From Paramicrosporidium saccamoebae KSL3 (taxonomy: Eukaryota; Fungi; Cryptomycota), in the NCBI GenBank assembly GCA_002794465.1, contig MTSL01000205.1, positions 54,229-86,228 on the forward strand: a stretch of DNA of 32,000 nt, in the 5' to 3' direction. The notes beneath the pieces were generated by a model. The model ran no database searches, was not told the DNA's origin, and was given only the letters and a program-made list of their open reading frames with translations. The position numbers and the translations under genes were made by a program. Positions 700 through 25,327 of the stretch are shown piece after piece (the stretch's first letter is position 1; every line of letters begins with the position of its first letter).

Positions 700-954
700 T
701 GTGTGTGGTCACGTTGGCGTCCAGCGCTGTTAAAGAAGACTATCGACCAATGAGAACGGCCGAATTGCTATTCATACCAAAAACACACATGTAGTTGCAA
801 ATATACAAGCTGATTAATTAATCAAACGTTGCCAATCAATCTAGCTCGATTTCTGGATGAAGTAGGCCAAAACTCGGGAGAACAATGCATGGGTGGCTTC
901 TGGGTGCGTCGACCCAAACAAACGAAACCGAAGCGATTCGCAGGGCACGCCACG

Positions 955-1534
955 ATGCCCACCAGCACGCTCCCCGCCTGGTGGACCCTCCAGGACAAGG
1001 TCACTGTCGCCCTCCCACCAAACTACACTGCCCGACCCCTCCAAGCCACCGACTACGACCATGGCTACCTCGAATGTCTTGGCCAGCTGACCCTCGTCGG
1101 ACCCGTCTCCCGCTCTCAATTCCTTGGTAGCGATGCGTCCTCTTTTCATGCGTGTAGAACGACTGGAATACATGCAACGGCATGACGACACCTACATGCC
1201 CATGGTAATCCTTGACGCCCAACGGGTGGTGGCCTGCGGGACCTTGGTCATTGAACGCAAGTTCATCCACCAGTGCGGAATGTTGGCCCACATTGAGGAC
1301 ATTGTGGTGAGCGAGGATCAGCGTGGCACTGGCCTGGGTCGCATTCTCATCCAGCAGCTCAAACATCTGGCCTTCAAACATGGCTGTTACAAGATTACCT
1401 TGGATTGTGATATAAAGAATGAGCCGTTCTATGCCCGGGGCGACTTTGAGACAAAGGGGCTGCAGATGTGTATATACTATCGCGATGATCCGGCCACCAC
1501 GCCGACCTCGCCCAAGTATCCCCACCAACTGTAG
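955..1534 (+). CDS. GNA1: Glucosamine-6-phosphate N-acetyltransferase (GNAT)
   Basis: A 31-nt GT-AG intron (1127-1157) joins RPLQATDYDHGYLECLGQLT to GTLVIERKFIHQCGMLAHIEDIVVSEDQRGTGLG...YKITLDC, the typical Gna1 motifs. Start ATG at 955 is inferred. Confidence 0.9.
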
Positions 1535-3223: not shown

Positions 3224-3260
3224 TAAACGTAGCGGGTCGGGAGAGGTAGAAGGTGTAGAC

Positions 3261-3277
3261 TTTGTTTACTTGTTTAC
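3261..3277. promoter_or_regulatory. Two tandem forkhead consensus sites (TGTTTAC x2)
   Basis: TTTGTTTACTTGTTTAC lies 38-54 bp upstream of the inferred forkhead gene ATG, in the spacer shared with DPB2. Confidence 0.6.
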
Positions 3278-3509
3278 TGCCAACTTTTGACAAGGCGTAG
3301 GGAGGCTGTCCAGATAAATGCTAAAGTGTCACTAGTCAGAGAGCAGTAGGTGGGCCGAGAAGATGCGCAAGAGTCGACCAAAAACACAGTCGCGCAGTCA
3401 ATTCGACTCGACCGGGTCGTAAACAACTGCAAAAATTTCCCCTGGGAGCCAATCAGCATCCGAGGGAGAGGGACTCTTGGGCGTGAACAATCGACCAATA
3501 GGAGGAAAG

Positions 3510-5213
3510 ATGCTAGCGGGAGGCGGAAGCGTAAAGGTGAATCAGGTGATTTGGCGAGTCTTTACAAAGACCCACGGGCTGACATTGCAGACGGATGCAG
3601 TGGAATATTTAAAGGAGAAATTGGGATCGAGTGCGTTGACAGAGCAAGAGCTTGTCACGACGTTGAATTTTATTGCGACTGCCTATAAGCAGCAAGCCAG
3701 TACCCTTCCATGGCGGGTTTACATTATCTAGGTCGTCCCACATTGGTGGACTACAATGCGCTTTCCAGCGTTATTGAAGGGATGCTAAAGCTAAATGTGT
3801 CAGAGGACGGAACCGGAAAGGCGCTGGCCAAGAATTTCATCCACGTCATCAACGCCCACGACACGCCTAGATGGGACTATGATCCCCATCAAAAGCTTTT
3901 CAGTCTGTAACCCACGTGTCCGGTTTGAACTTTAGGTCTATGGAGAAGCCCTCGCTACTTGGTAGGGCCTATTCAAAGGTGACCATGTTCAGGCGCCATT
4001 ATGAAGTGCTCAAGCAGCGACTATTGCGAGCAGAACAGTTTCGCGGAGTCTCCTGTGCCAAGGTTCTGCTATACAACTGTCTAAGTGTTTAGTTAATGTC
4101 CATCAAAGCGATTAAGGGCCAAAAGACTTTGGATCGAAAACTCTTGTTTGGCGTTTTGTCGTTTATTGAAGAGGGCCGACTATATCTGGAGGATCTTGAA
4201 GACAACATTCGCCTTGATTTGACCAATGTCGATAGTTTCGTCCCGGCTTTGTACACTGAAACATCAATGGTTGTGGTGGGCGGCAGTCCGAATGGAGACT
4301 GCTTCACAGTGGAATTTATCTCTCCCCCGCCACTAGAGAGTCGAGCACAGAGTACCGAGACCATTTCCTATCCAAATCTCCTGGCAGGCTCGGCTATTGC
4401 AGATTCGATGCTCCAGTTCAGGGCCCTGGAGAAGGAATATATGGATGCTGCCGTAGTCATCTTGTCTGATGTGTGGTTAGATTGTGCCCGTACCTTGGCC
4501 AAAGTTGAAATGTTGTTCCGTGGATTTGAAAGCGCCACTGTCCCGGCAGCATTTGTTATAATGGGGCCATTTGTGTCCAATCTGCATAGGGGTACTCCTG
4601 CACTTGGTGCATTGCACCGGGTATTGTCTAATTTGGCAGCAATGATCCACCGATACCCTACAATATGTCGACAGAGCAAGTTTATTCTCGTCCCTGCTTT
4701 GGATGATCCACTGGCGCCCAAGATACTCCCTCGTCCACCGCTCCCCATCGAGCTTCTTGAGCCGTTCAAGCATTATTCCATCGACTGTGTATTTGCATCC
4801 AATCCGGCCCGGTTGTACATTTTCACCAAAGAAATACTTCTCTTCCGACGTGACTGCACTGTTGCCTTGAAGAAAAACTTGATTCCCGAATTGTCCCGAG
4901 ATACCACAGACCAATGCGGAACATTTAGAGCCGTCCTGGAACAGGCGCATCTCTGTGCCCTGTCGTTGGCAATTCAGCCAAGGGCGTGGGAGTATGACCA
5001 TGCACTGAGGGTATATCCATCGCCTGATTTTCTGGTAATTGGAGAACGGAGTCGGCCCACTGCGAGTCGAGAGACCGATGACTGTTTGGGCATCAATCCT
5101 GGCTCTTTTGCCACTTCCGAGTTTTCCTTTGCGCTTCTCTACCCTATGCTTGGCAAAATTGAAGCTTGGTACTGTTCCTTATCCATCACTAATCCCTCCA
5201 TAGTAAAGTATAA
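3510..5213 (+). CDS. DPB2: DNA polymerase epsilon subunit B
   Basis: Four introns (3700-3731, 3907-3935, 4063-4092, 5169-5203) restore one frame. Motifs: RVFTKTHGLTL, FRRHYEVLKQRLLR, VILSDVWLD, FILVPALDDP, SNPARL, EQAHLC, WEYDHALRVYPSPD. Confidence 0.92.
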
Positions 5214-5633: not shown

Positions 5634-5704
5634 ATCAGGATTAACAATCGTAAGTAGATACGGCTTAACAGGATCTCACATACCTAGTCTGTATATACAC
5701 TATT

Positions 5705-7635: not shown

Positions 7636-7679
7636 ACTCGTTAGTAGGCGCCCAATCAGCGTGTGGCTCACGGTCGGAC

Positions 7680-10183
7680 ATGGAGGTTAAGCTGCCAATG
7701 CAGCCCGATACGAGACGAGTCATTATTGTCTCGGATACCCTACCCGTGGCCATTGTACAGAGAGAGAATGAAGTCCCAGCACGGACTTGTGGCGACAGTC
7801 CCAACGAACGACCTCGACGTCGTCGCCGTCTGAGTTTGGCATTCCAGAATGACGCGTCCGAGATACTTTCGTCGACAGAGGAACATAGCCCCATTAGTAA
7901 TCTGGAAAGATACGAGCTTGTGGAACGACATAATCATGCTGCGTACTGGGTTAATGCGCAACTTGGGTGCGAGGCTGTCTTGGTAGGAAAGCCATTTGGA
8001 ATTGAACCTTCAGAATGGGCTGATAATCCCAGCCTACAGGCAGAGATCAAGGAGCGGTATTGGCATGAAAGGAGATGTGTTCCTGTGCTGCTGAGCGAAA
8101 GTGTCCATCGTGGACATTGGGATGGCTACTGCCGGTCGTCATTATGGCCGCTATTCCATTATGTACTCTGGGAGAGCAACATAGACGCTGGACAGACCAG
8201 CGACTGGGACAAGTATGTACAGGCAAATGCCGCATTCTGTGAGACGATAATGTCCGTCTGGAAGCCAAATGATATTAGTATTGATTTTTCATCCCTGTCT
8301 GATGCCTAGTTTGGGTCATTGACTACCAACTCATGCTGCTCCCGTCCATGTTGAGGGAGAGGAATGAAAATGTCATTGTGGCATTGTTCCTACGATCTCC
8401 ATTTCCTAGCTCTGAGGTTTTTCGATGCCTGCCGCGTACAAATACAAGGCTTCTCTAATTTGTAGAGGCCAAGGAAGTTTTGCATGGAATATTGGGGGCC
8501 AATGTGGTGGGATTCCAGACATATGGATATGCACGTCACTTTATCAGCAGCTGCACCAGAATCCTAGGCTGCGAATCAACTCCCAACAGTGTCGACAATG
8601 CCGGTGTTCCCGTGAGAGTTGCTGTGCAGCCAGTGGGCATTGATCCGGCTCGAATAAAGCGACTAGCGTCTCTGCAAGCTGTTACCGATAGGATTGCGTC
8701 TTTACGAGAGTCATTCGGGGGGAAGCGGATCATCGTTGGCTTGGAATCGTCTGATCAGTCGCGGGGTATAATACACAAGTTGAGATCTTTTGAAAAGCTC
8801 TTCTCAATGTACCCCGAGGTGATTGGCGAAGTTGTTCTGATCCAGCTGATTTATACCACCGGAGATCCAAAGAGCAAGCTTGATGCCCGGGTCTCGCAGC
8901 TTGTCTCTAAAATCAATGGAATGTTTGGCTCGTTTGACTACAAGCCCATCAATGTCTTTCATCAGCTTGTAGAGAGGAATGAATATCTAGCCCTCTTGTC
9001 AGTGGCAGATATTCTTCTTATCACCAGTGAACGAGACAGCGTCAATACACTGGTTCTGGACTACATTGCATGCCAAGAGGAGACTCAAGGGATCCCTGTG
9101 ATTAGTGAATTTATTGGATTGGCTGGAGTGTTACCTGCTAAGTATCAAGTGAACCCTTGGGATCACATGGGAACAGCCAAGGTAATACGGGAAGTGCTGC
9201 AGTTGTCCCCGCTGGAGAGGAGGGCATATTGCGAAAAGATTACCCGCTTTGTCAAGTCGAACACGACGCAACACTGGGTGGATGCCTTCCTTAGGACAAT
9301 TAAATCCACCGCAGATTCTAATAGTATGTACACTACGACTCCCTTCCTCCGGCTGGACAAGGTTCTGGAGTGCTATTCAGAGGCTACAAAACGGTTAATT
9401 TTGTTGGACTACGATGGAACGTTGACACCCATCAGAAAAGTCCCCAGCGCAGCAACGCCGTCGCAGGAGGTAATTCGATCTTTGCGTCTTCTCACTTCCG
9501 ACTCGCACAACCTTGTATATATAATCTCAGGGAGAGACCAGATGACGCTTGAAGGATGGCTGGGAACTATTCCGCGTCTGGGGATGAGCGCCGAGCATGG
9601 GAGCTTCCTTCGTCCTGTGACAGAGACTGGCGAAGTTACTAATTGGATGGCAATGGTTTCACTGGAAGAACTCGTGTGGAAGGACGACGTTACCAAGATT
9701 ATGGAGTACTATACAGAGAGGACGCCGGGTTCGTTTATTGAAGTCAAGACTGCCTCCATGACATGGCACTATCGGCTTGCTGATCCAGACTTTGGATCGT
9801 GGCAATCCAAAGAGATGCAAAACCACCTGGAACAATCGATTGCATCAAACTATGCAGTGGAAATTATCGCAGGGAAGAAGAACTTGGAGGTGAGGCCCAA
9901 GACTTCGAACAAGGGCGAGATTATCAAAATGCTTCTGGAGAGACATGGGATGCCCAATTTCATCCTGTGTGCTGGAGACGATCGCACAGATGAGGACATG
10001 TTTCGGGCGCTAAACGACATTCAGTGTCCAATTTTGGAGCAACAATGTTTCACCTGCAGCATCGGAGCGCCTGGGAAAAGAACGCTTGCACATTATCATG
10101 TAAACACACCAGAGCAAATTGTGAGTCTACTGATGCGACTCTGCACAATGATCACAGAGCGACTTGCTGGATTGACAATGTAA
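7680..10183 (+). CDS. TPS2: Trehalose-6-phosphate phosphatase with N-terminal GT20 synthase-like domain (Tps2-type)
   Basis: Introns at 8278-8309 and 8436-8465. GT20 segments LWPLFHY, PFPSSEVFRCLP and VGFQT; HAD motifs LLDYDGTLTPI, ISGRD, AEHG and GDDRTDEDMF. Confidence 0.88.
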
Positions 10184-10316
10184 TAAAAATGTCCCGATTT
10201 GAACGGCGAGAGGCAAAATACTGGAGAATTGATACTCCCCCCTCGTTTTAGTATTTTCTCTACCACGCGAAAAACTCGCTGGATCAACAATGTAATAAAG
10301 ATGCCCCGATTTGGAC
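10163..10316. repeat. 42-bp imperfect direct repeat (10163-10204 and 10275-10316)
   Basis: Ungapped alignment with 36/42 identity. Copy 1 spans the TPS2 stop codon. Confidence 0.85.
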
Positions 10317-10323
10317 AAATTTG

Positions 10324-11244
10324 ATGCTACTCGTAGTGTTTTTATGCGTGATTGTGCTTGTGAAGGGAGAGGTAGAAAGCAAATCCTTTCCAGGCCTAAC
10401 CAAAAGAGACAGCTATATTACTTTTCCTGTCGCCAAACATGTACACAGTCATCTCTTAATCCTCACGGGTTCAGTTTAGATTGGACAGACCGATTGTTCA
10501 TTATCACAATTCGACCACCTATCGGAACGTCCCGTACCATTGTAACCCTACAGCATCGCTTATTTGTTAGATGTTCGTCTTGACAATCCAAATGGACATT
10601 TGCACGTAATCACAGCTGGAGATAAGGGCTGTCCTGGCAGGATGAGCACCAGCGATACGGCTCGTCTACTTGGCTGCAAAGTTGCCACGAATGCCGGCTT
10701 TTTTAACATGCAAACCGGCGACTGCATTGGAAATGTTGTCTCGCGCTCCCATCTCGTCCAACTCAGCGGCCTGCGCAATGTTAACATTGGTCTCACTCCT
10801 GCTGGATGGCTCGTGGGTTATCTCACCAAAAAAAGCGTTCAGCATCTCCAATTCAAAGAGTTGGTTGCCGGCGTCATCTGGCTTATCAGAGAAGGCGCAC
10901 CGTTCTGGGAAGAGAGCGAAATAGTCGAGGCACCTGATTTCATGGACATCGTTGCGCCACGCACCATCTTGGGACACGATGCCATGGGGAGGGCGGTGCT
11001 CGTGGTGGTGGAGGGCACCGAGTCGGTGGATGTGGGTGGCAAGACGGCATCAGGGGTGACAATTGCCGAATTGGGGCAACTCGCATTAGACTTGAAGTTG
11101 CACAATGCCATTAACCTGGATGGCGGTGGAAGTTCAGCCTTCTTCTTTGATGGCCAAATGATGAACACGATTACAGAAACGTGTCCAGATGATCCATCGA
11201 GCATATGCGAGAGGTTAGTAACTACCATTATCTGTATCAAATAA
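10324..11244 (+). CDS. NAGPA: Phosphodiester glycosidase, NAGPA (uncovering enzyme)-like, secreted, ~285 aa
   Basis: Signal peptide MLLVVFLCVIVLVKG; introns at 10441-10474 and 10542-10570. GCKVATNAGFF..TGDCIGNVVS, LVAGVIWLIREG, APRTILGHD and NAINLDGGGS parallel animal NAGPA. Confidence 0.85.
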
Positions 11245-11377: not shown

Positions 11378-11815
11378 TTACTTTGTCCGGATTAACTTTA
11401 ATGGCGCAGGCGAGTAGGCGAAATTGGCTGCATAAGATTTATGTCGCCAATGTGTTTCTTCTCCGCTACGCACTGCGTATTGCCAACCTTGTCTTTCGGC
11501 AAACCGCACCGCATCTGCTTCACTGTCAAACTTTAAACTGACACCCTGCATTGCGTCACGGGAACTCGTCCAGCCCATTAGGGGATTCTCCCATCGGGCT
11601 TGTTCGTTGTCAAAGTCAAGCCGCCACGCAGAGGTATGGAGTAGACCGCTTTGCATGGCATTGCGAGCCGGTTGGTAAATGTACACACGGCGAGCCGTTA
11701 ATCCTGGGGGCGTACTGGCAGCCGCATTAACCCGAACTTCTGGCACTGCAACCGGTGCTACATTCCGGGTGGAGAAGCGCCGAAGAAGAGCAAATAACTT
11801 GTGTTGCGGCGGCAT
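11378..11815 (-). CDS. NDUFS4: NADH:ubiquinone oxidoreductase subunit NDUFS4
   Basis: RRVYIYQPARNAMQSG, RWENPLMGWTSSRD, LKFDSEADAVRFAERQGW and KSYAANF. The only usable ATG before the conserved core is 11815, which gives a presequence-like N-terminus. Confidence 0.93.
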   Translation of the reverse strand: MPPQHKLFALLRRFSTRNVAPVAVPEVRVNAAASTPPGLTARRVYIYQPARNAMQSGLLHTSAWRLDFDNEQARWENPLMGWTSSRDAMQGVSLKFDSEADAVRFAERQGWQYAVRSGEETHWRHKSYAANFAYSPAPLKLIRTK

Positions 11816-11831
11816 TTGATTGGTTGGGAGT

Positions 11832-14531
11832 ATGAATCCGGATGAAGAGTTATCAAAACTTGGGGTAGAGGCAGTTGATGTGGGAGAATATGAGTCTTCC
11901 TTTGAAAAAAAGGTGCGGCCAAGACGAAAGCTTCCTAGACGTGTAGGTTGATCGTGAAATGAGGGAACAGGAACGGACACTGGAATGGAAGCGGCTGGAA
12001 AAGACACGAGAGAGTATTGCAACGCTGCGATTACGCATCGATACGGCCTCGGAAAAGGTTTCAGTAGCAAGGCTAGCCAAACTAGTAATGCTAGGATAGT
12101 CTACTGATTATAGATGGACCGGATGGACGAGCTGCTAGAAGAAGAGAGGCTTATTTTGGAGCGTATCGATATGCATGTCCACGAAAGGACAGTGCCAGCT
12201 GTTGCTCCGGCCAAGAGGCCAAAGCTGGCTGCTGAGACAATACCCGTGAAAGAGGTTGTAAATGTTGAAGATGGCGCATCCGATGCCTCGGTGGTGTCAG
12301 GGGAAGAAACTGAAGAATCCTACGACGATGGCAACGAAGCCTTTTTCCAGTCGAGACTAAAGAGATGGATCGATGAATTTGGGGGAGAGGTAGATCTGTC
12401 AATTCTGCAAAAGGATTTGGAAGAGCAAGCCAGTGGCTTGACGTTTCCAGCACTCGTCAACACGGACGTGCCGGGATTCAAAGTGCCCTCCATGGTTTGG
12501 GAACGATTGCTCGACTATCAGCGAGACGGTGTACAATGGCTCTTGAATCTTTATCGACAGGAGGTAGGGGGCATTTTGGGTGACGAAATGGGTCTGGGAA
12601 AGACGATCCAAATTGTGGCACTCATTTCATCCCTCCAAGCCAGTGGAAAGCTGGATCGACCCGTCTTGGTGGTTTGTCCAGCGACAGTGATGAAGCAGTG
12701 GGTCAAAGAGTTTCATTCATGGTGGCCAATCCTACGCATCGTGCTACTTCATTCGGCTGGCAGCTTGGGAGGTGATCTTAAAAAGGCAATCAAGTCGGTT
12801 TCGCGAAAAGGCCACGTCATGGTTACCTCATACGGACACTTGCAGCATCGGATAATTGGGAAAAGGATTTTGGAAGAGACCTTTAGTGCAGTGATCCTCG
12901 ACGAAGGACACAAAATTCGCAATCCAACCACTGAAATTACCGTCTTGTGCAAAAAGCTACAAACTCCACATCGGTTCATCTTGTCGGGAACGCCGATCCA
13001 AAACAATTTGATCGAGCTGTGGTCATTGATGGATTTTGTGTATCCGGGACGGCTGGGAACATTAAATGTGTTCAAGGCTGAAATTGCATTGCCTATTAAT
13101 GCGGGTGGCTATTTAAATGCTTCCTCGCTTTTGGTTCAGACCTCGTACAAGTGTGCCTGCATCCTCAAAGACCTCATTGCCCCATACCTCCTAAGGAGAG
13201 TAAAGGCGGATGTTGCGCAGAGTTTGCCCGAGAAGCAGGAACAGGTATTGTTCTGCCAGCTTACAGAATATCAGCGCGAGTTGTATGAGCATTATATTCA
13301 ATCCGAAGATGTCAGAGCAATTTTATCAGGGGAAAAGAACATTTTGGCTGGAATCGACATTCTTCGCAAGATTTGTAACCATCCCTCCCTACTAAGAGTT
13401 GAAGATGAGCAACTTTATGGCCTCACACACATTAGTGTACCGACAGATCCCAATTTGAAAAGTGGAAAACTAAATGTTCTCACCAGTATCCTTCAGCATT
13501 GGCATGCGAACGGGCATCGAGTCTTGTTATTCTCTCAGACCCGACAAATGCTCAACATTATAGAAGATTTTATCGTCCAGAGCAATTTTCGCCATCTTCG
13601 CATGGACGGCACTACCCCAATCCACCAACGAATGGCACTCGTGGACGAGTTTAATGGAAAAAGGGACATATTCATCTTTCTCCTCACAACCAAAGTTGGT
13701 GGGCTGGGCATCAATCTGACCGGAGCAGATCGTGTGCTTATTTATGATCCAGACTGGAATCCCTCCACAGACATTCAGGCAAGAGAACGAGCATGGCGAC
13801 TCGGCCAGACGAGACCCGTCACTATATACCGGATGCTGACGGTGGGTACTATTGAGGAAAAGATTTACCATCGACAAATCTTTAAGCAATATTTGACAAA
13901 CCGGATTCTGGCAGATCCCAAGCAAACACGCTTTTTCAAGTCTTCTGACTTGTATGATTTGTTTACATTATCAAGTGTTGAATCCCATGACGTATCTGAG
14001 ACAAAGGCCCTTTTGGAGGAGTCGTCCAAAGAAGACAATAGTCACATTTTGGATGGCTTGCTGCAGATTACAGGATTGCATTCGGCACTTGAGCATGACA
14101 AGTTGATTGAAAAGCCAAAGCGTGAGTTGCTATTAGTAGAGAGGGAGGCCCAGAAACGTGCAGCCGAGGCCATTGAGGCGCTGCAGAGATCCCGAGAGAT
14201 GCGCAATCTGGACACGATCCAGGTGAGTCTTGGCGCTGGTTTGTCGTCGTCTGCCATCATGGCTAGTATCCGCCGACGACAGCTAGCAGCCACAGATGAC
14301 ACTCCTGTCACTGTGCCGGCTGGACAGGAGCCGCTGCAAAAGATTGTGGATCAGCTTTTCGTATTGTTTACTCTGAGTCATGGAAAGTGCTCGAGTCAGT
14401 TCATTGCATCCAAGTTTTCATTCGTAGTAGGAGACGATGCAATTGCATTCCGCCAGGTATTGCGCACAATTGCCACATTGGATGGAAGTGGAATGTGGAG
14501 ACTAAAGGACCAATATTATAGAGCAACCTAA
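11832..14531 (+). CDS. RAD26: SNF2-family ATPase Rad26/CSB (transcription-coupled repair)
   Basis: GGILGDEMGLGKTIQ, ILDEGHKIRNP, LSGTPIQNNL and QARERAWRLGQ. Two introns (11913-11946, 12085-12113) add an N-terminus LSKLGVEAVD... resembling the CSB N-terminal coiled coil. Confidence 0.92.
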
Positions 14532-14609: not shown

Positions 14610-14973
14610 TTACTTCCTATCCTCCACCATGATAATGTGATAGCCAAATTGAGTCTTGACAGGTGGATCTGTGTAGATGGGGCAGTTGACCGTGCTTGGC
14701 TGCAGTTGAAAGGCAGCCTCCTGGAATGCCCCCACCATTGACCCGCGTACCATCCAGCCCAAACTGCCTCCTTGCCGCGCCTTGTCCTCGCTAAACTTTT
14801 CTGCAACACTGTTGAAACTCTGGCCGGCTTTGAGCAGAGCCATTGCCTCCATACACTTGCCATGCTTCTCGCACAATATGTGACGAACCTTGACTGACGT
14901 GGCCGATTTCAGCTCGTCTAGAATATAGCCAAATGGACTGTGACTTACCATTACCCTTCTTCTTGGGTGGCAT
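14610..14973 (-). CDS. PIN4: Parvulin-type peptidyl-prolyl isomerase Par14
   Basis: MPPKKKGN, a 31-nt intron (14918-14948, GTAAGT), then [23 protein letters not shown] and [15 protein letters not shown]. Confidence 0.93.
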
Positions 14974-15002
14974 GAAATGTCCAACCAATCGGGACCCGTC
15001 GC

Positions 15003-18857: not shown

Positions 18858-19386
<529 letters not shown>

Positions 19387-19800: not shown

Positions 19801-19817
19801 TTGTCCCCTATACATAC

Positions 19818-19833
19818 GGCTTTTTTAAAAGCC
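19818..19833 (+). other. Histone 3' stem-loop element (H3)
   Basis: GGCTTT-TTTA-AAAGCC (6-bp stem, 4-nt loop), 17 nt after the H3 stop. Confidence 0.8.
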
Positions 19834-20259
19834 TATCTGTTGCCTGATACCCATTGTCATTTAGCAACGGATTCAGATGCAGAATACATAGTGTAGAGCG
19901 GGCGAGTCTTAGTATTGAGTAGTTAATTGAGTCTTGCTGAGTTTTATTGAGTAATTGGTTGATTGGTCTCATGAGTTGGCTCTTGTGCTGGCTGAATATT
20001 GGAGACGATTATTTGATAATAATTCACACCAACCAGTTTCTTCCGAGATTTATTGTTCACTTGCAGAGTATGGTGCGCCGGTCACATGTTTAATGAGACT
20101 ACATTTCCGAAACAGCTACAGTACTGGCGAGTGGCAGTAATTGACGGTTACGATCTGTGTTACATTACACATACCATTCATTTTCATTGCATTTGTAAAT
20201 TATCAAAGTCTATCACCAACGCAACGTGGTCGTGCCATAGCTATTTAATTGATACCCGC

Positions 20260-22593
20260 TCAGAAACTATCCGAACTCTCCATCGAAAGACTTGCCAGGG
20301 GCAGTAACGTCAATATATCTTGGCTTGGTTGGGACATGTCGGGATTGATAAGAGTATTCCATTTCAAAACGCGTTCGCATCCCTGCTCAGCAGCCAGATC
20401 AATTTCAATCTGATTCAAGGCCCAGCCAGGTTTAAATCCGTCCAGAGAATCTGGATGATATCGCGTCAGGAACCATTCCAAAGTTTTCAATTTTCCAATT
20501 TTACAGGCTAGATGCAATGCTGCCACGCTTGGCTGGTGCCGTTGAAGATTAGAATTGCTGTAGCACTCCAAAAGATCCACATAGCCGCTCGTAGCGGCAG
20601 TATTGACTTCATCTTGGGTCAATGTCCAGCCGGGAGTGACAGCGGTGTACAATTCAAGATTGGCGCAACGTCCTGATCTGCATGTCTCGTTCACTACATC
20701 CAAAGCTGGTCGGGGCATTACGCTGTTGACACTGGTACGGGCAGCCCATTCCAAAACGCGCACGTATCCTTTTACAGTGGCATGGTCGATAATGTTTCGT
20801 GGCACTTTCCATTCATATCTGGGCAAGGATGGATGTCTTGTCAGAACCCATTCGAAAGCTCCCAAAGATCCAAGAATCGTGGCCATTGCTTTTAGAGTAC
20901 GTCTGCTCGGTGGAGGCATGTTGGGATTAACAGAGGCCCACCATTCCAAAACATTAATACGATTCCATTCTGCGGCCTTATCAATGTCTTCTTGGCTCAA
21001 TGTCCTGCCAAGACCGATTTCGGTAAACCATTTGAGGACGTCTAACTTTCCACGTCTGCAGGCCACATTCCATGCTTTTGCGCTTGGCTGGGTCATTTGA
21101 TGCTTGTCAAGATTGTATTGCCACTGCAAAATGACCACTTGTCCATACTCAATAGCAGTATCCATGTTGTCTTGATTCATTACCCAGCTGGGATTGACCG
21201 AGGTGTGCCACTTTAAAATGTCAATATGGCCCCGTTTAATGCAACGACAAATGTCACTTTCACTCAGCATCCAGTCATGGTCAATGGCGGCGTACCATTT
21301 AAGACTTTGTATACGATTGTTCTTGATGGCTTTAATCACCGCAGTTGCACTTGGTCGAGGCATTTCGGGATTGATACCTGAGTACCATTCCAGGATGCGT
21401 ACACTTCCACTAGCAGTAGCGACATCAATGTACTCTTGACTCAATGTCCAATCAGGATTGGTGGACTCGTACCATTGGAGAACTTCCAAATAGTCACGGT
21501 TGCAAACCTCAGTTAGTGTTGCGACATCCAGTAAAAGCGCTCTAGGAAGCAGAGAGGTGCACCATTTAAAAACATGCATATAGCCGTTTATAGCTGCTTT
21601 TGGGATATACTTCAGATTCAACTTCCAGCCAGGCTTGAATTCGTTTACACGATCACTGTAATATCGAGAGAGATACCACTCGATAACTTGTAAATTTTCC
21701 CCCTCATATGCCAACGTTAGCGCACTATGACTCAGAGGAGGCATTGCAGGATCAATACTCAAATACCAATTCAAAACGTCCGTACCACAGTATATGCTGG
21801 CAGCTTTATCGACATCCCTCTGACTAATGGTCCAGCTCGGATTGTATGAACGAATACGATGGAGAATATTTGACTTGCCGTGATTAGTCAAGATCTCAAG
21901 ACTATAGATAGAGGGCACTCTCCCTACTTTTTCCAAGAGGAATAGCACGCTGTCATCTGGCTCCAAGTCTTCAATTGCATTGTCTAAATCCTTCATGCAT
22001 GGCGTCCATAGTCCTTCGTCAATCAATGATTGAAGGAAAGTAATGTTTCCTTCAGAAAGTGCATAACTCGGTCTGCAGGTGAAAGCAATGCTACGCTCTT
22101 TCAATAATCTCGCCAGTCGCAACGTGTGGGGATACATCAAGCGAAACTTTGCATTCTCGAATGCAGACAGATCAGACAGAGTTCCTGCAATATTGATGGC
22201 GTCATGCTGAAGTAAACCACTTGGTTCTAGTACTTTTTCACGCAATTTAGGTGGTAGTGTTTCAAGCAAGCTCGGATTATCAGCAAGTATAATAGAGGAA
22301 ATATTGGCTCCCAGTTCCTCCTCCGAGACCAAGGTGGCGCACCACAAAGTGCCAAAATACTTGGCATAACACCATACACGCTCTTCAGCTGTCCTTTGCG
22401 ATAGGTCAGGGACCCTCTCAAAGATGCCTTTGGAGACACGCTCAACAACTTCCTTCACAGTCATCTGGAATTCGCCAAAGGGGCAATGTCCAGACAAGCG
22501 TTGGAGTAGCTGCTGCTCATTAAGGTCCTTTAAACCAGCTCCCGAGATGGAACCCAGAAACAGGGAAAGACAAGCAACGAGCGACACTTTCAT
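20260..22593 (-). CDS. Secreted ankyrin-like repeat protein, paralog 1 (777 aa)
   Basis: Intronless. Signal peptide MKVSLVACLSLFLGSISG; repeats of the form WTLSQ..D.A...G...ILEWY..INP.MP.PS. Confidence 0.8.
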   Translation of the reverse strand: MKVSLVACLSLFLGSISGAGLKDLNEQQLLQRLSGHCPFGEFQMTVKEVVERVSKGIFERVPDLSQRTAEERVWCYAKYFGTLWCATLVSEEELGANISSIILADNPSLLETLPPKLREKVLEPSGLLQHDAINIAGTLSDLSAFENAKFRLMYPHTLRLARLLKERSIAFTCRPSYALSEGNITFLQSLIDEGLWTPCMKDLDNAIEDLEPDDSVLFLLEKVGRVPSIYSLEILTNHGKSNILHRIRSYNPSWTISQRDVDKAASIYCGTDVLNWYLSIDPAMPPLSHSALTLAYEGENLQVIEWYLSRYYSDRVNEFKPGWKLNLKYIPKAAINGYMHVFKWCTSLLPRALLLDVATLTEVCNRDYLEVLQWYESTNPDWTLSQEYIDVATASGSVRILEWYSGINPEMPRPSATAVIKAIKNNRIQSLKWYAAIDHDWMLSESDICRCIKRGHIDILKWHTSVNPSWVMNQDNMDTAIEYGQVVILQWQYNLDKHQMTQPSAKAWNVACRRGKLDVLKWFTEIGLGRTLSQEDIDKAAEWNRINVLEWWASVNPNMPPPSRRTLKAMATILGSLGAFEWVLTRHPSLPRYEWKVPRNIIDHATVKGYVRVLEWAARTSVNSVMPRPALDVVNETCRSGRCANLELYTAVTPGWTLTQDEVNTAATSGYVDLLECYSNSNLQRHQPSVAALHLACKIGKLKTLEWFLTRYHPDSLDGFKPGWALNQIEIDLAAEQGCERVLKWNTLINPDMSQPSQDILTLLPLASLSMESSDSF

Positions 22594-22894: not shown

Positions 22895-25327
22895 TTATGT
22901 GCTAATTATATATTCAATGAGACCACACGACCAAAACAACGCCAACGTCAACGCCAACAGTGGGACGACAACTGGAGCTAGTCCATCCTCAGGATAACGT
23001 TTAGGCTCCGCTGCACTGTGAGGATTTTCTATAGGGAGCCGTGGCAGTATATCTGCGCTTGGGTGAGGCGGGCCGGGATTGACAAGAGCGTTCCACTTCA
23101 AAACATGTCGACATCCCTGCTCAGCAGCCAGATCAATCTCAAGCTGATTCAAGGCCCAGTCAGGTTTAAATCCATCCAGAGAGTCTTGGTGATACCGCGT
23201 CAAGAACCATTCCAAGCTCCCCAATTCCCCGGTTATACAGGCCAGATGCAGTGCTGTAGCGCTTGGCTCGTGAATTTGGGGATTGAACTTGACATAACAT
23301 TCTAAAAGATCCACAAAACCGCGTGTAGCAGCGTCATTGATTTCATCTTGAGTCAATGTCCAGCCAGGAGTGACAGAGGCATACCATTCGAGATCGGCAC
23401 AACGCCCCAACTTACACATTACGTTCAGCCCCTCTATATCTAGTCGAGGTATTATAACACCGACATTAGCGTGGGCAGCCCAGTTCAGAACATGCACGCC
23501 TCCTATTTCAGCGGCCTTGTCGGCCATACGTTGAGCCCACGTCCAGGAACATCCGAGCAAGAATGTGTGCTTTCGGTGACAGTTTTTCAGAAACCATTCA
23601 AACACTCTTGTATTCTCATGGATCACAATTGCATTCCCCAAAGCAGTTTCGCTTGGTTGAGGCATGTTGGGATCAACAGAGACCCACCACTCCAAGACAT
23701 CCAACTGTCCCTCTTCAGTAGCCACATCAATGTCCTCTTGACTCAATGTCCTACCACGTCCGATTTCCGTAAACCATTCGAGGAATTTCAAATTTCCATT
23801 CTTGCAAGCCACATGCCATACCTCCGCGCTCGGTTTAGTTATTTTACTCTCGTTAAGAGCATATTGCCATTTCAAGATATCCAGTTTCCCGTGTCTAGTG
23901 GCAGTATTAATATTTTTTTCGTCCATTACCCATCTGGGATTAATCAAGGCATGCAACTTTAAGATCTCGATATATCTAAACATAATGCAATAATGGATTT
24001 CTCCTTCATTCAGCATCCAACTATGGTCAACAGTGGCATACCATTTGAGAACTTCTAAATGATTGCTCTTGACAGCCTGATACACTGCAGCTTGGCTTGG
24101 CTGAGGCATTTTAGGATTAATACTTGCATACCATTCTAGAATGCGCGCTTTTCCACACCCAGCAATGTTGTCAACGTTTTCTTGACTCAATGTCCAGTCC
24201 GAATTAACAGAGTAATACCATTGGATAATCTCCAAAAAGCCCTTGCAGCAAACCGCCTCCAGTACGCTGGCGCTTAGCGGAGGCATCTCAGGAAGTAAAA
24301 ATGCGTAGCATTTCAAAACATGTATATGTCCCTTCATAGCTGCCCGCCCGATATGACCTGGATTTAATTCCCAGCTAGGTTGGAATGAGCCTTCACAACC
24401 GCTGTAATATCTGGATAGATACCACTCGATAGCACCTATCCTTTCTTCCCAATGTGCCCTTTGCAACGCAGCAAGGCTTGGGCGAGGCATTTTAGGATCG
24501 ATACTCATATACCAGGTCAAGACTTCCGCACCGTTGGATAGAGTAAGGGCCTTATCCACTTCACTCTGACTTATGGTCCAGTCTTGATTGTATGAACGGA
24601 TGAAACGGAGAGTATCTGACGTGTCGAAACTAACCAAAAATGAAAGAATATCAATAGAAGGCACTCTTCTTAGTTTCTCCAAGAGAAATAGCACGCCACG
24701 TTCCGGCTTCATTAATTTAGTCGCATTTTTCAAGTCATCCATGCACGGCATCCAGAGTCCCTCGTCAAGTAACGATTGAAGAAAAGTAATGTGTGCGTAC
24801 GTCGGCCTGCAAGTGAAAGCAATGCCATGCGCTTTCAGTAATCTCGCCACTCGCAACGTGCTGCGATGATCCACGTCAATCTTCACATCTTTGAATACAG
24901 AGAGATCAGGCAGGCTCTCTGCAATATTGATGGCGTCATACTGAGCTACAGCACTCGGTTCTAGCACTTTTTCACGCAATTCCGGTTGCAAACTTTCAAG
25001 CACACTCGGATTATCAGCCATGAGAATGGAATGGGTATTGTCTCTCAATTCCTCTTCCGAGGCCAAGGTGGCGCACCGAGGAGTGCCATAATACTTAGCA
25101 TAACACCATACGCGCTCTTCAGCTGTCCTTTGGGACATTTCAGGGACCCTCTCAAAGATGCCTTTGGAGGCACGCTCAAAGATTTCTTCCACAAGCATTT
25201 GGAATCTATCGAGGGAACATTTTTCAAGCAAACCCAGAAGTAGCTGCCCATTATCAAGGCTCTTTAAACCCGCTCCAGATATGCATCCTAGGAGCAGATG
25301 AAGGCATGCAATTAACGACACTTTCAT
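22895..25327 (-). CDS. Secreted or membrane-anchored ankyrin-like repeat protein, paralog 2 (810 aa)
   Basis: Collinear paralog of 20260-22593 with a signal peptide, the same repeats and an extra hydrophobic C-terminus PVVVPLLALTLALFWSCGLI. Confidence 0.8.
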   Translation of the reverse strand: MKVSLIACLHLLLGCISGAGLKSLDNGQLLLGLLEKCSLDRFQMLVEEIFERASKGIFERVPEMSQRTAEERVWCYAKYYGTPRCATLASEEELRDNTHSILMADNPSVLESLQPELREKVLEPSAVAQYDAINIAESLPDLSVFKDVKIDVDHRSTLRVARLLKAHGIAFTCRPTYAHITFLQSLLDEGLWMPCMDDLKNATKLMKPERGVLFLLEKLRRVPSIDILSFLVSFDTSDTLRFIRSYNQDWTISQSEVDKALTLSNGAEVLTWYMSIDPKMPRPSLAALQRAHWEERIGAIEWYLSRYYSGCEGSFQPSWELNPGHIGRAAMKGHIHVLKCYAFLLPEMPPLSASVLEAVCCKGFLEIIQWYYSVNSDWTLSQENVDNIAGCGKARILEWYASINPKMPQPSQAAVYQAVKSNHLEVLKWYATVDHSWMLNEGEIHYCIMFRYIEILKLHALINPRWVMDEKNINTATRHGKLDILKWQYALNESKITKPSAEVWHVACKNGNLKFLEWFTEIGRGRTLSQEDIDVATEEGQLDVLEWWVSVDPNMPQPSETALGNAIVIHENTRVFEWFLKNCHRKHTFLLGCSWTWAQRMADKAAEIGGVHVLNWAAHANVGVIIPRLDIEGLNVMCKLGRCADLEWYASVTPGWTLTQDEINDAATRGFVDLLECYVKFNPQIHEPSATALHLACITGELGSLEWFLTRYHQDSLDGFKPDWALNQLEIDLAAEQGCRHVLKWNALVNPGPPHPSADILPRLPIENPHSAAEPKRYPEDGLAPVVVPLLALTLALFWSCGLIEYIIST

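Follow-up and report, generated by a model that had tools for sequence, protein, structure and literature searches.

The 32,000-nt stretch of DNA analyzed here (the window) comes from Paramicrosporidium saccamoebae KSL3: the NDUFS4 protein encoded in it gave an exact match to contig MTSL01000205.1 of assembly GCA_002794465.1. P. saccamoebae is an intranuclear parasite of amoebae with a genome of 7.3 Mb, 3750 genes and 47% GC, and it has retained respiratory complex I (genome paper of the species, in which introns and intergenic spacing are not discussed). In the window, the complex I gene NDUFS4 on the minus strand and RAD26 on the plus strand are arranged head to head. Read along the plus strand, CAT (11813-11815), the spacer TTGATTGGTTGGGAGT (11816-11831) and ATG (11832-11834) follow one another directly. 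On the minus strand, the first 12 bases of the spacer read CCAACCAATCAA, with ATTGG at 11819-11823; the NDUFS4 and RAD26 ATGs are 3 and 8 nt away from this CCAAT box, respectively (Table 1). The chance of finding CCAAT or ATTGG in a random 16-bp segment of the window was P = 0.034. In addition, the spacer contains a GGG/CCC triplet (11826-11828) and no AAATTT.

In the deposited annotation, RAD26 consists of one exon (12123-14531) that encodes 802 amino acids (aa). With the two upstream exons listed in Table 1, the corrected model encodes 878 aa, which means that the deposited annotation drops 76 residues. The length of intron 1 is not divisible by three, and therefore this intron must be spliced. 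Relatives were found by searching with the extended RAD26 protein; all are uncultured, and their RAD26 proteins are 43-65% identical to that of the window. L010, L004, L002 and L003 form a close clade with the window, and L008, L005 and L007 are more distant. Exon 1 was conserved at the protein level in L002, L003, L004, L007 and L010, and in L010 the ATG opens the same motif. Both upstream exons were in frame in L002, L003, L004 and L007, with introns at identical codon positions and GT-AG or GC-AG boundaries. The GC-AG boundary was seen at RAD26 intron 1 of L004 (5412-5444, GCAAGA...GTGTAG). The same RAD26 segment is uninterrupted in L005 and L008 (P0011 and P0019, respectively), and the spliced product of the window is colinear with it. 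A further sequence, L012 (P0008 contig), is a genomic fragment beginning in exon 2 and was uninformative.

Over 63 aligned codons of RAD26 exons 1 and 2, pairwise differences numbered about 12-27 at the first codon position, 9-15 at the second and 36-39 at the third (in summary, about 20/13/37 of the 63); in such a comparison, the third-position excess is the signature of purifying selection on the N-terminal protein. Moreover, a profile of this region matched the extreme N-terminus of Rad26 (8he5_O, residues 7-114, E = 2.4e-7) and S. cerevisiae RAD26 (5vvr_M, residues 14-116, E = 7.7e-4). An in-frame TGA at 11817-11819, five codons upstream of the ATG at 11832, excludes any RAD26 start further upstream. 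In-frame upstream ATGs in L003 (5574), L004 (5295) and L008 (5001) were considered as starts and rejected, since the extensions are unconserved and the window has its in-frame TGA there. Another donor for intron 2, at 12058 (56-nt intron), is also in frame and was rejected because it would delete the conserved VSVARLAKL segment, which the donor at 12085 keeps.

The NDUFS4 coding sequence agrees with the deposited gene, and its Pfam domain PF04800 spans residues 44-135 (E = 8.7e-37). Met1 is the sole methionine ahead of the conserved core, and the frame upstream of it is open and has no ATG. The basic residues 1-43 look like a mitochondrial presequence; an equivalent variable presequence was present in NDUFS4 of four close relatives, and the N-terminus of the window protein (MPPQHKLFALLRRFS) is similar to that of the more distant L005 (MPLSVRLFNLLRNRS). 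On this genomic evidence, both start codons are correct, and the upstream exons of RAD26 are real despite the deposited annotation. The initial annotation, in which the two ATGs (NDUFS4, minus, 11815; RAD26, plus, 11832) stood 16 bp apart around a CCAAT box, is thus correct as written. Its two arguments for the starts were borne out as well: NDUFS4 has no other ATG before the conserved core, and the resemblance of RAD26 exon 1 to the CSB N-terminus has its counterpart in a profile match to solved Rad26 N-termini and in conservation in five genomes.

In L002, an out-of-frame ATG at 5634 (minus) lies 4 nt downstream of CCAAT (CCAATCAAAATG), arranged like the NDUFS4 start of the window (CCAATCAAATG). 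It opens a 58-codon frame across the L002 NDUFS4 start and may be a relic or may restrict where transcription can start. We also considered whether L002 NDUFS4 has a 5' intron that would bring this box-adjacent ATG into use, and reading the sequence gave no in-frame solution.

NDUFS4 (minus) and RAD26 (plus) were adjacent and head to head in all eight genomes compared, with the spacer lengths given in Table 1. Direct DNA alignment of the five close-clade spacers failed, and the match between the window and L002 was confined to the box region. Exactly one CCAATCA was nevertheless found in each of these five spacers (window, L002, L003, L004 and L010), and the CCAAT box is, judged from these sequences, the only element kept in five otherwise unalignable spacers. 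The box was located 24, 22, 24 and 23 nt from the NDUFS4 ATG in L010, L004, L002 and L003, respectively, compared with 3 nt in the window, and its distance to the RAD26 ATG ranged from 0 to 87 nt across the close clade. It lies on the NDUFS4-sense strand in four of these genomes and is inverted in L004, where the distance to NDUFS4 is 22 nt versus 23-24 nt in the others. The distance of 22-24 nt in four relatives versus 3 nt indicates that the 16-bp state is derived and that about 20 bp were lost in P. saccamoebae. The L003 spacer is swollen by (CCTA)n, (CATA)n and (TA)n repeats directly upstream of the RAD26 ATG (5640-5684).

No convincing TATA-like element for either gene was found within the first codons of the partner; the only weak AT-rich patches were AAATAA at 11792-11797 and TTTTGATAA on the minus strand at 11851-11859. 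Rfam and tRNA scans of the window gave nothing able to explain the spacer.

Table 1 Features of the NDUFS4/RAD26 locus, its relatives and the other divergent spacers of the window
Feature	Location	Strand	Size	Sequence and remarks
NDUFS4 coding sequence	11378-11815	minus	145 aa	single exon; same as deposited gene; Pfam PF04800
NDUFS4/RAD26 ATG-to-ATG spacer, window (close clade)	11816-11831		16 bp	TTGATTGGTTGGGAGT; read from the sequence
CCAAT box with NF-Y/HAP-type flanks	11817-11825	minus		AACCAATCA; fits RRCCAATSR
RAD26 exon 1	11832-11912	plus	27 codons	MNPDEELSKLGVEAVDVGEYESSFEKK; protein-level conservation; missing from deposited model
RAD26 intron 1	11913-11946	plus	34 nt	GTGCGG...GTGTAG; same site in four relatives (33-83 nt)
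RAD26 exon 2	11947-12084	plus	46 codons	VDREMREQERTLEWKRLEKTRESIATLRLRIDTASEKVSVARLAKL; colinear with intronless orthologues P0011 and P0019
RAD26 intron 2	12085-12113	plus	29 nt	GTAATG...CTGATTATAG; same site in four relatives (34-84 nt)
RAD26 exon 3	12114-14531	plus		SNF2 ATPase core and C-terminal domain
NDUFS4/RAD26 spacer, close clade	L010		29 bp	
NDUFS4/RAD26 spacer, close clade	L004		38 bp	
NDUFS4/RAD26 spacer, close clade	L002		63 bp	
NDUFS4/RAD26 spacer, close clade	L003		115 bp	
NDUFS4/RAD26 spacer, more distant	L008		about 110 bp	
NDUFS4/RAD26 spacer, more distant	L005		143 bp or more	
NDUFS4/RAD26 spacer, more distant	L007		223 bp	
Parvulin (ATG 14973, minus)/Sec6 (ATG 15003, plus) spacer	14974-15002		29 bp	CCAACCAATCGG; CCAAT 14985-14989
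583-aa gene (ATG 7635, minus)/trehalose-phosphate synthase (TPS; ATG 7680, plus) spacer	7636-7679		44 bp	GCCCAATCAGCG; CCAAT 7652-7656
H4/H3 divergent promoter	19170-19386			GAGCCAATGG; CCAAT 19301-19305; TATA facing each gene; initiator-like CATCGTC/CATAGTC
Forkhead/DPB2 divergent spacer	3224-3709			GAGCCAATCAGC (CCAAT 3449); GACCAATAGG (CCAAT 3495)
Vps60/GNA1 divergent spacer	700-888			GACCAATGAG (CCAAT 747); GCCAATCAAT (CCAAT 832); GNA1 start 889 or 955 uncertain
Parvulin, revised model	14610-14973	minus		ATG 14973; exon 1 14949-14973; intron 14918-14948 (GTAAGT...TCTAG); exon 2 14610-14917

CCAAT or ATTGG was also found in the other divergent spacers of the window, giving 6/6 hits with nine boxes in 981 bp. 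Under random placement of segments of the same lengths, the probability that all six would be hit was 2.5e-5, and that for the three shortest (16, 29 and 44 bp) was 2.3e-4. The flanks fitted RRCCAATSR at five of the nine spacer boxes and at 4 of the 84 boxes elsewhere in the window (Fisher P = 2.6e-4). Specifically, the parvulin/Sec6 spacer carried CCAAT in all seven genomes, and in five of these the box precedes the Sec6 ATG by 8-16 nt. The spacer between the 583-aa gene and TPS carried it in all four close-clade genomes covering this region (window, L002, L003 and L004), and in L002, L003 and L004 the box was 6-7 nt from the minus-strand ATG. Among unidirectional promoters scanned over 120 nt upstream of the ATG, those of the BiopterinH, 777-aa and 810-aa genes had no CCAAT, and none was seen in two L009 tandem spacers of 46 and 228 bp that were inspected. 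NDUFS4/RAD26 is one extreme instance of a locus-wide pattern, and the pattern is probably genome-wide. Among the relatives, the L002 parvulin/Sec6 spacer (9001-9039) contains a tandem array of three CCAAT boxes spaced by 8 nt (CCAATGCGCCAATGAGCCAATCG).

Leader lengths were estimated from promoter elements and upstream ATGs; look-ups of the window NDUFS4 and Vps60 proteins returned the genome contig only and no RNA assembly. The H4/H3 promoters of the window (19170-19386), L002 (13120-13360) and L005 (upstream of 12383) each showed one TATA per gene, a conserved initiator-like GCATCGTC and one CCAAT. At the histone promoters, the initiator-like CATCGTC (CATAGTC at H3 of the window) was located 28-33 nt downstream of TATA, a geometry that would give leaders of 9-31 nt. 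For TPS in L002 and L003, TATA was located about 40-45 nt before the ATG. Upstream ATGs opening frames over the true start were found 31 nt upstream of parvulin, 26 nt upstream of Sec6 and 20 nt upstream of L002 NDUFS4, suggesting that the leaders of these genes are shorter than 31, 26 and 20 nt, respectively. Additionally, in L002, L003 and L004 alike, the NDUFS4 ATG was preceded at 6-7 nt by an initiator-like CATT.

At the window pair, the ATG-free runs upstream of the NDUFS4 and RAD26 starts were 223 nt (P = 0.015) and 153 nt (P = 0.055) long, respectively, each compared with a random position. Both runs reach into the coding exons of the partner, suggesting that crossing 5' untranslated regions (UTRs) would be tolerated. 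With leaders of about 10-30 nt and a spacer of 16 bp, the 5' ends are most simply placed as crossing by a few to a few tens of nucleotides. Thus, either the two 5' ends cross or the mRNAs are almost leaderless, one of which is probably the case at this locus. The initial annotation had argued that 16 bp force the mRNAs to be nearly leaderless or to overlap head to head, and this follows from the two validated starts.

The explanation that we favor, and hold to be reasonably likely, is that NDUFS4 and RAD26, a head-to-head pair of ancient conservation in the hyper-compact genome of a member of Rozellomycota, share a miniature bidirectional promoter with an NF-Y/HAP-type CCAAT box. A CCAAT-binding histone-fold complex (NF-Y, or Hap2-3-5) on the box would keep the site open and allow initiation in both directions. 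Leaders in this lineage would be short, about 9-31 nt and down to 6-7 nt at NDUFS4 in the relatives. In the 16-bp spacer, which would have arisen by the loss of about 20 bp between box and NDUFS4 ATG with 3 nt left, the 5' ends would most likely cross, the alternative being two almost leaderless mRNAs. Either way, each pre-initiation complex would sit on the first codons of the partner gene, and consequently NDUFS4 and RAD26 could not initiate simultaneously.

The box itself is best described as NF-Y-type rather than as a proven NF-Y site, having the sequence features that define such sites. The initial annotation had named an NF-Y/HAP site as the main shared element. This view gains from the box being the sole element retained in the spacer and from its RRCCAATSR flanks, and loses from its position and from its absence in two distant genomes. 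In the window, the box lies 3 and 8 nt from the ATGs, and in most relatives 0-34 nt, rather than at the canonical -60/-100 of animal NF-Y sites. At 0-24 nt from the start codons, the canonical NF-Y position is impossible for the nearer gene. CCAAT was absent between NDUFS4 and RAD26 in the distant L005 and L008, with TATAAAAA in its place in L005, and in L007 it was present but with different flanks.

Further points also weigh against a shared NF-Y-type promoter as the explanation. The support for NF-YA/B/C genes in P. saccamoebae is indirect and comes from a single survey, in which most species retained a single PF02045 (NF-YA) gene and whose set included Encephalitozoon, unlisted among the exceptions (PMC9973273). 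A literature search found nothing specific on NF-Y or CCAAT in Rozella, Paramicrosporidium or Microsporidia. The evidence from upstream ATGs is mixed, pointing to short leaders at parvulin/Sec6 and L002 NDUFS4 and allowing a long overlap at the window pair. We infer the transcription start sites, the 5' overlap and the splicing of both RAD26 mini-introns (34 and 29 nt) from genomic sequence, and the CCAAT statistics cover about 42 kb of one contig (the window plus 10 kb to its left). In those 10 kb, the sole divergent pair, Sec24/Trs120, has no CCAAT in its 57-bp spacer. Hence, the CCAAT rule holds in 6/7 divergent spacers examined and is not absolute, and the enrichment in short divergent spacers that the initial annotation had named as a check stands for the window with this exception beside it.

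Several other explanations were weighed. It is very improbable that the deposited annotation is right, with RAD26 starting at 12123 (or 12114), non-coding upstream exons and an ordinary short promoter in about 300 bp between the ATGs. The MAKER model, made with RNA-seq evidence, does start at 12123, and the ATGs at 12114 and 12123 open a long open reading frame (ORF). However, in five genomes exons 1 and 2 are conserved at the protein level, with substitutions distributed as in coding sequence and with introns at identical sites. They also line up with the orthologues that lack introns and share homology with the very N-terminal end of Rad26 proteins of known structure. The deposited annotation also misses the 31-nt intron of parvulin, and very short introns seem to escape it. 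Improbable as well, though less so, is the absence of a dedicated promoter in the spacer, with long read-through or multigene transcripts of the microsporidian kind, begun deep within the neighboring gene or past it, carrying the coding sequences and CCAAT kept for another factor or as an RNA-level signal. Transcripts that overlap or span several genes have been documented for E. cuniculi and A. locustae, and the ATG-free runs of 153 and 223 nt upstream of both starts would suit them. Nevertheless, the inversion of the box in L004 at a kept distance from NDUFS4 is consistent with a DNA-level, orientation-independent site. The flanks fit NF-Y, the boxes are confined to divergent spacers, and the histone TATA and initiator-like elements show conventional local initiation in this genome.

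Strictly near-leaderless, back-to-back starts inside the 16-bp spacer, flanking the box without overlap as in Microsporidia, would deserve more credit, although we regard them as rather unlikely. The leaders would then be at most 3 nt for NDUFS4 and at most 8 nt for RAD26. This arrangement would agree with the 5' UTRs of 1-7 nt in E. cuniculi, with the upstream ATGs that confine the parvulin, Sec6 and L002 NDUFS4 leaders to about 20-30 nt or less, and with the initiator-like CATT that precedes the ATG of NDUFS4 by 6-7 nt in L002, L003 and L004. It is harder to reconcile with the 9-31 nt leaders given by the histone TATA/initiator geometry, with the loss of the ancestral 22-24 nt segment between box and NDUFS4 in the window, and with ATG-free runs of 153 and 223 nt that reach into the partner genes. 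Moreover, NF-Y has a footprint of about 25 bp, which would cover both putative start sites. A more far-reaching proposal, which we rate as slightly less likely still, is that the CCAAT/NF-Y box turned into a core-promoter element in the Paramicrosporidium clade, taking over the positioning role of TATA/TBP and firing both ways with leaders of 6-7 nt. After the loss of the 20-bp leader segment, P. saccamoebae mRNAs would start inside each other's first codons. The box would act from a fixed position about 15-20 bp upstream of the initiator-like CATT, and 22-24 nt away from the ATG of NDUFS4 or 13-16 nt away from that of Sec6. The histone-fold complex would bend the DNA, and the N-terminal codons of each gene would double as the core promoter of the partner.

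The shared miniature promoter that we favor has counterparts in other systems. In E. cuniculi, 5' UTRs shorter than 7 nt were determined by rapid amplification of 5' cDNA ends, and the head-to-head genes S16/L13 are 35 bp apart with one palindromic AAATTT (PMC2803860). Microsporidia, a sister lineage, thus share with the present locus a head-to-head spacer of tens of base pairs, one shared short signal and promoter elements placed against or into coding sequence. Unlike here, the S16/L13 signal is AAATTT plus a CCC-like motif rather than CCAAT, and the spacer is 35 bp rather than 16 bp. Microsporidia also have very few introns, whereas RAD26 opens with two mini-introns, and the leader lengths at the present locus are estimates.

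In mammals, human bidirectional promoters show a 5.3-fold enrichment of the NF-Y motif (PMC3121118), and the mouse Mrps12/Sarsm bidirectional promoter is driven by a CCAAT array (PMC1802594). The likeness lies in RRCCAATSR between divergent genes, enriched relative to unidirectional promoters; the mammalian boxes act in either orientation, and the inverted box of L004 would be consistent with this. As in Mrps12/Sarsm, one partner is a nuclear gene with a mitochondrial function. In contrast, the mammalian promoters span about 100-1000 bp with back-to-back starts and boxes about 60-100 bp upstream, compared with 0-24 nt from the start codons here. In fungi, Hap2 is a global regulator of respiratory genes (PMC9973273). 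The sequence ACCAATCA agrees with HAP-type sites of yeast and immediately precedes a complex I gene, at 22-24 nt in the relatives, whereas yeast HAP sites are located hundreds of base pairs upstream. The same type of box precedes Sec6, parvulin, TPS, DPB2 and the histone genes and therefore looks like a general promoter element that is not specific to respiration. Translation from short leaders of about 0-15 nt is a feature of mammalian mRNAs with the translation initiator of short 5' UTRs (TISU), over-represented among mitochondrial genes in mammals, and of Giardia and Entamoeba mRNAs. However, no TISU-like consensus was seen around the NDUFS4 or RAD26 ATG.

Known themes, namely microsporidian promoter compaction and CCAAT-marked bidirectional promoters, are joined at this locus in a geometry not described before. 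With validated starts 16 bp apart and one conserved factor site, the locus is a concrete case of how far a eukaryotic RNA polymerase II promoter can shrink. If CCAAT marks divergent spacers genome-wide, an NF-Y-type bidirectional architecture would predate animals and would have survived extreme compaction in the lineage leading to Microsporidia. For annotation, the public gene models miss introns of 29-34 nt and N-terminal exons (76 residues of RAD26; parvulin mis-started), and re-annotation could draw on the position and conservation of CCAAT, much as the CCC motif was used for E. cuniculi.

Several minor observations concern the neighboring genes. The deposited parvulin (Par14-like) is a 113-aa product from 14951 that appears to read through the 31-nt intron; the N-terminus of the revised model (Table 1) matches the MPPK... 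N-termini of relatives. The window thus contains three spliceosomal mini-introns of 34, 29 and 31 nt (11913-11946, 12085-12113 and 14918-14948), and the orthologous introns of relatives are 33-84 nt long. Between Sec24 and Trs120 (14962-15018 of L009, to the left of the window), an AT-rich palindromic TATATAT was seen, together with a 12-codon upstream frame that stops immediately ahead of the Trs120 ATG.

At 7698-11244 (plus), the deposited 1012-aa product joins trehalose-phosphate synthase/phosphatase to a C-terminal domain, NAGPA (phosphodiester glycosidase, PF09992), which is a separate ORF call in relatives; the true TPS start may be the ATG at 7680 rather than 7698. Two tandem paralogous ORFs of 777 and 810 aa (20260-22593 and 22895-25327, minus) have signal-peptide-like N-termini, many repeats of a '..LEWY..NP.MP.PS'-type motif and conserved 5' flanks (CTGGTGGCT.AAT..TTCAC). 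No called gene is on record for the 810-aa product. An AT-rich, gene-free stretch of about 460 bp (19801-20259), bounded by the 3' ends of H3 and of the 777-aa ORF, contains three ATTGG within 50 bp (19954, 19962 and 19998), one of them with full NF-Y-type flanks. It gave no Rfam match and might serve as a promoter for a small gene or non-coding RNA that is missing from the annotation. Finally, a deposited 102-aa gene at 841-1149 (minus) has no Pfam match and overlaps a plus-strand segment (829-1185) that resembles a conserved exon 1 of glucosamine-6-phosphate N-acetyltransferase (GNA1). For GNA1, the annotated start is at 1196, and the 102-aa minus-strand gene is probably spurious.

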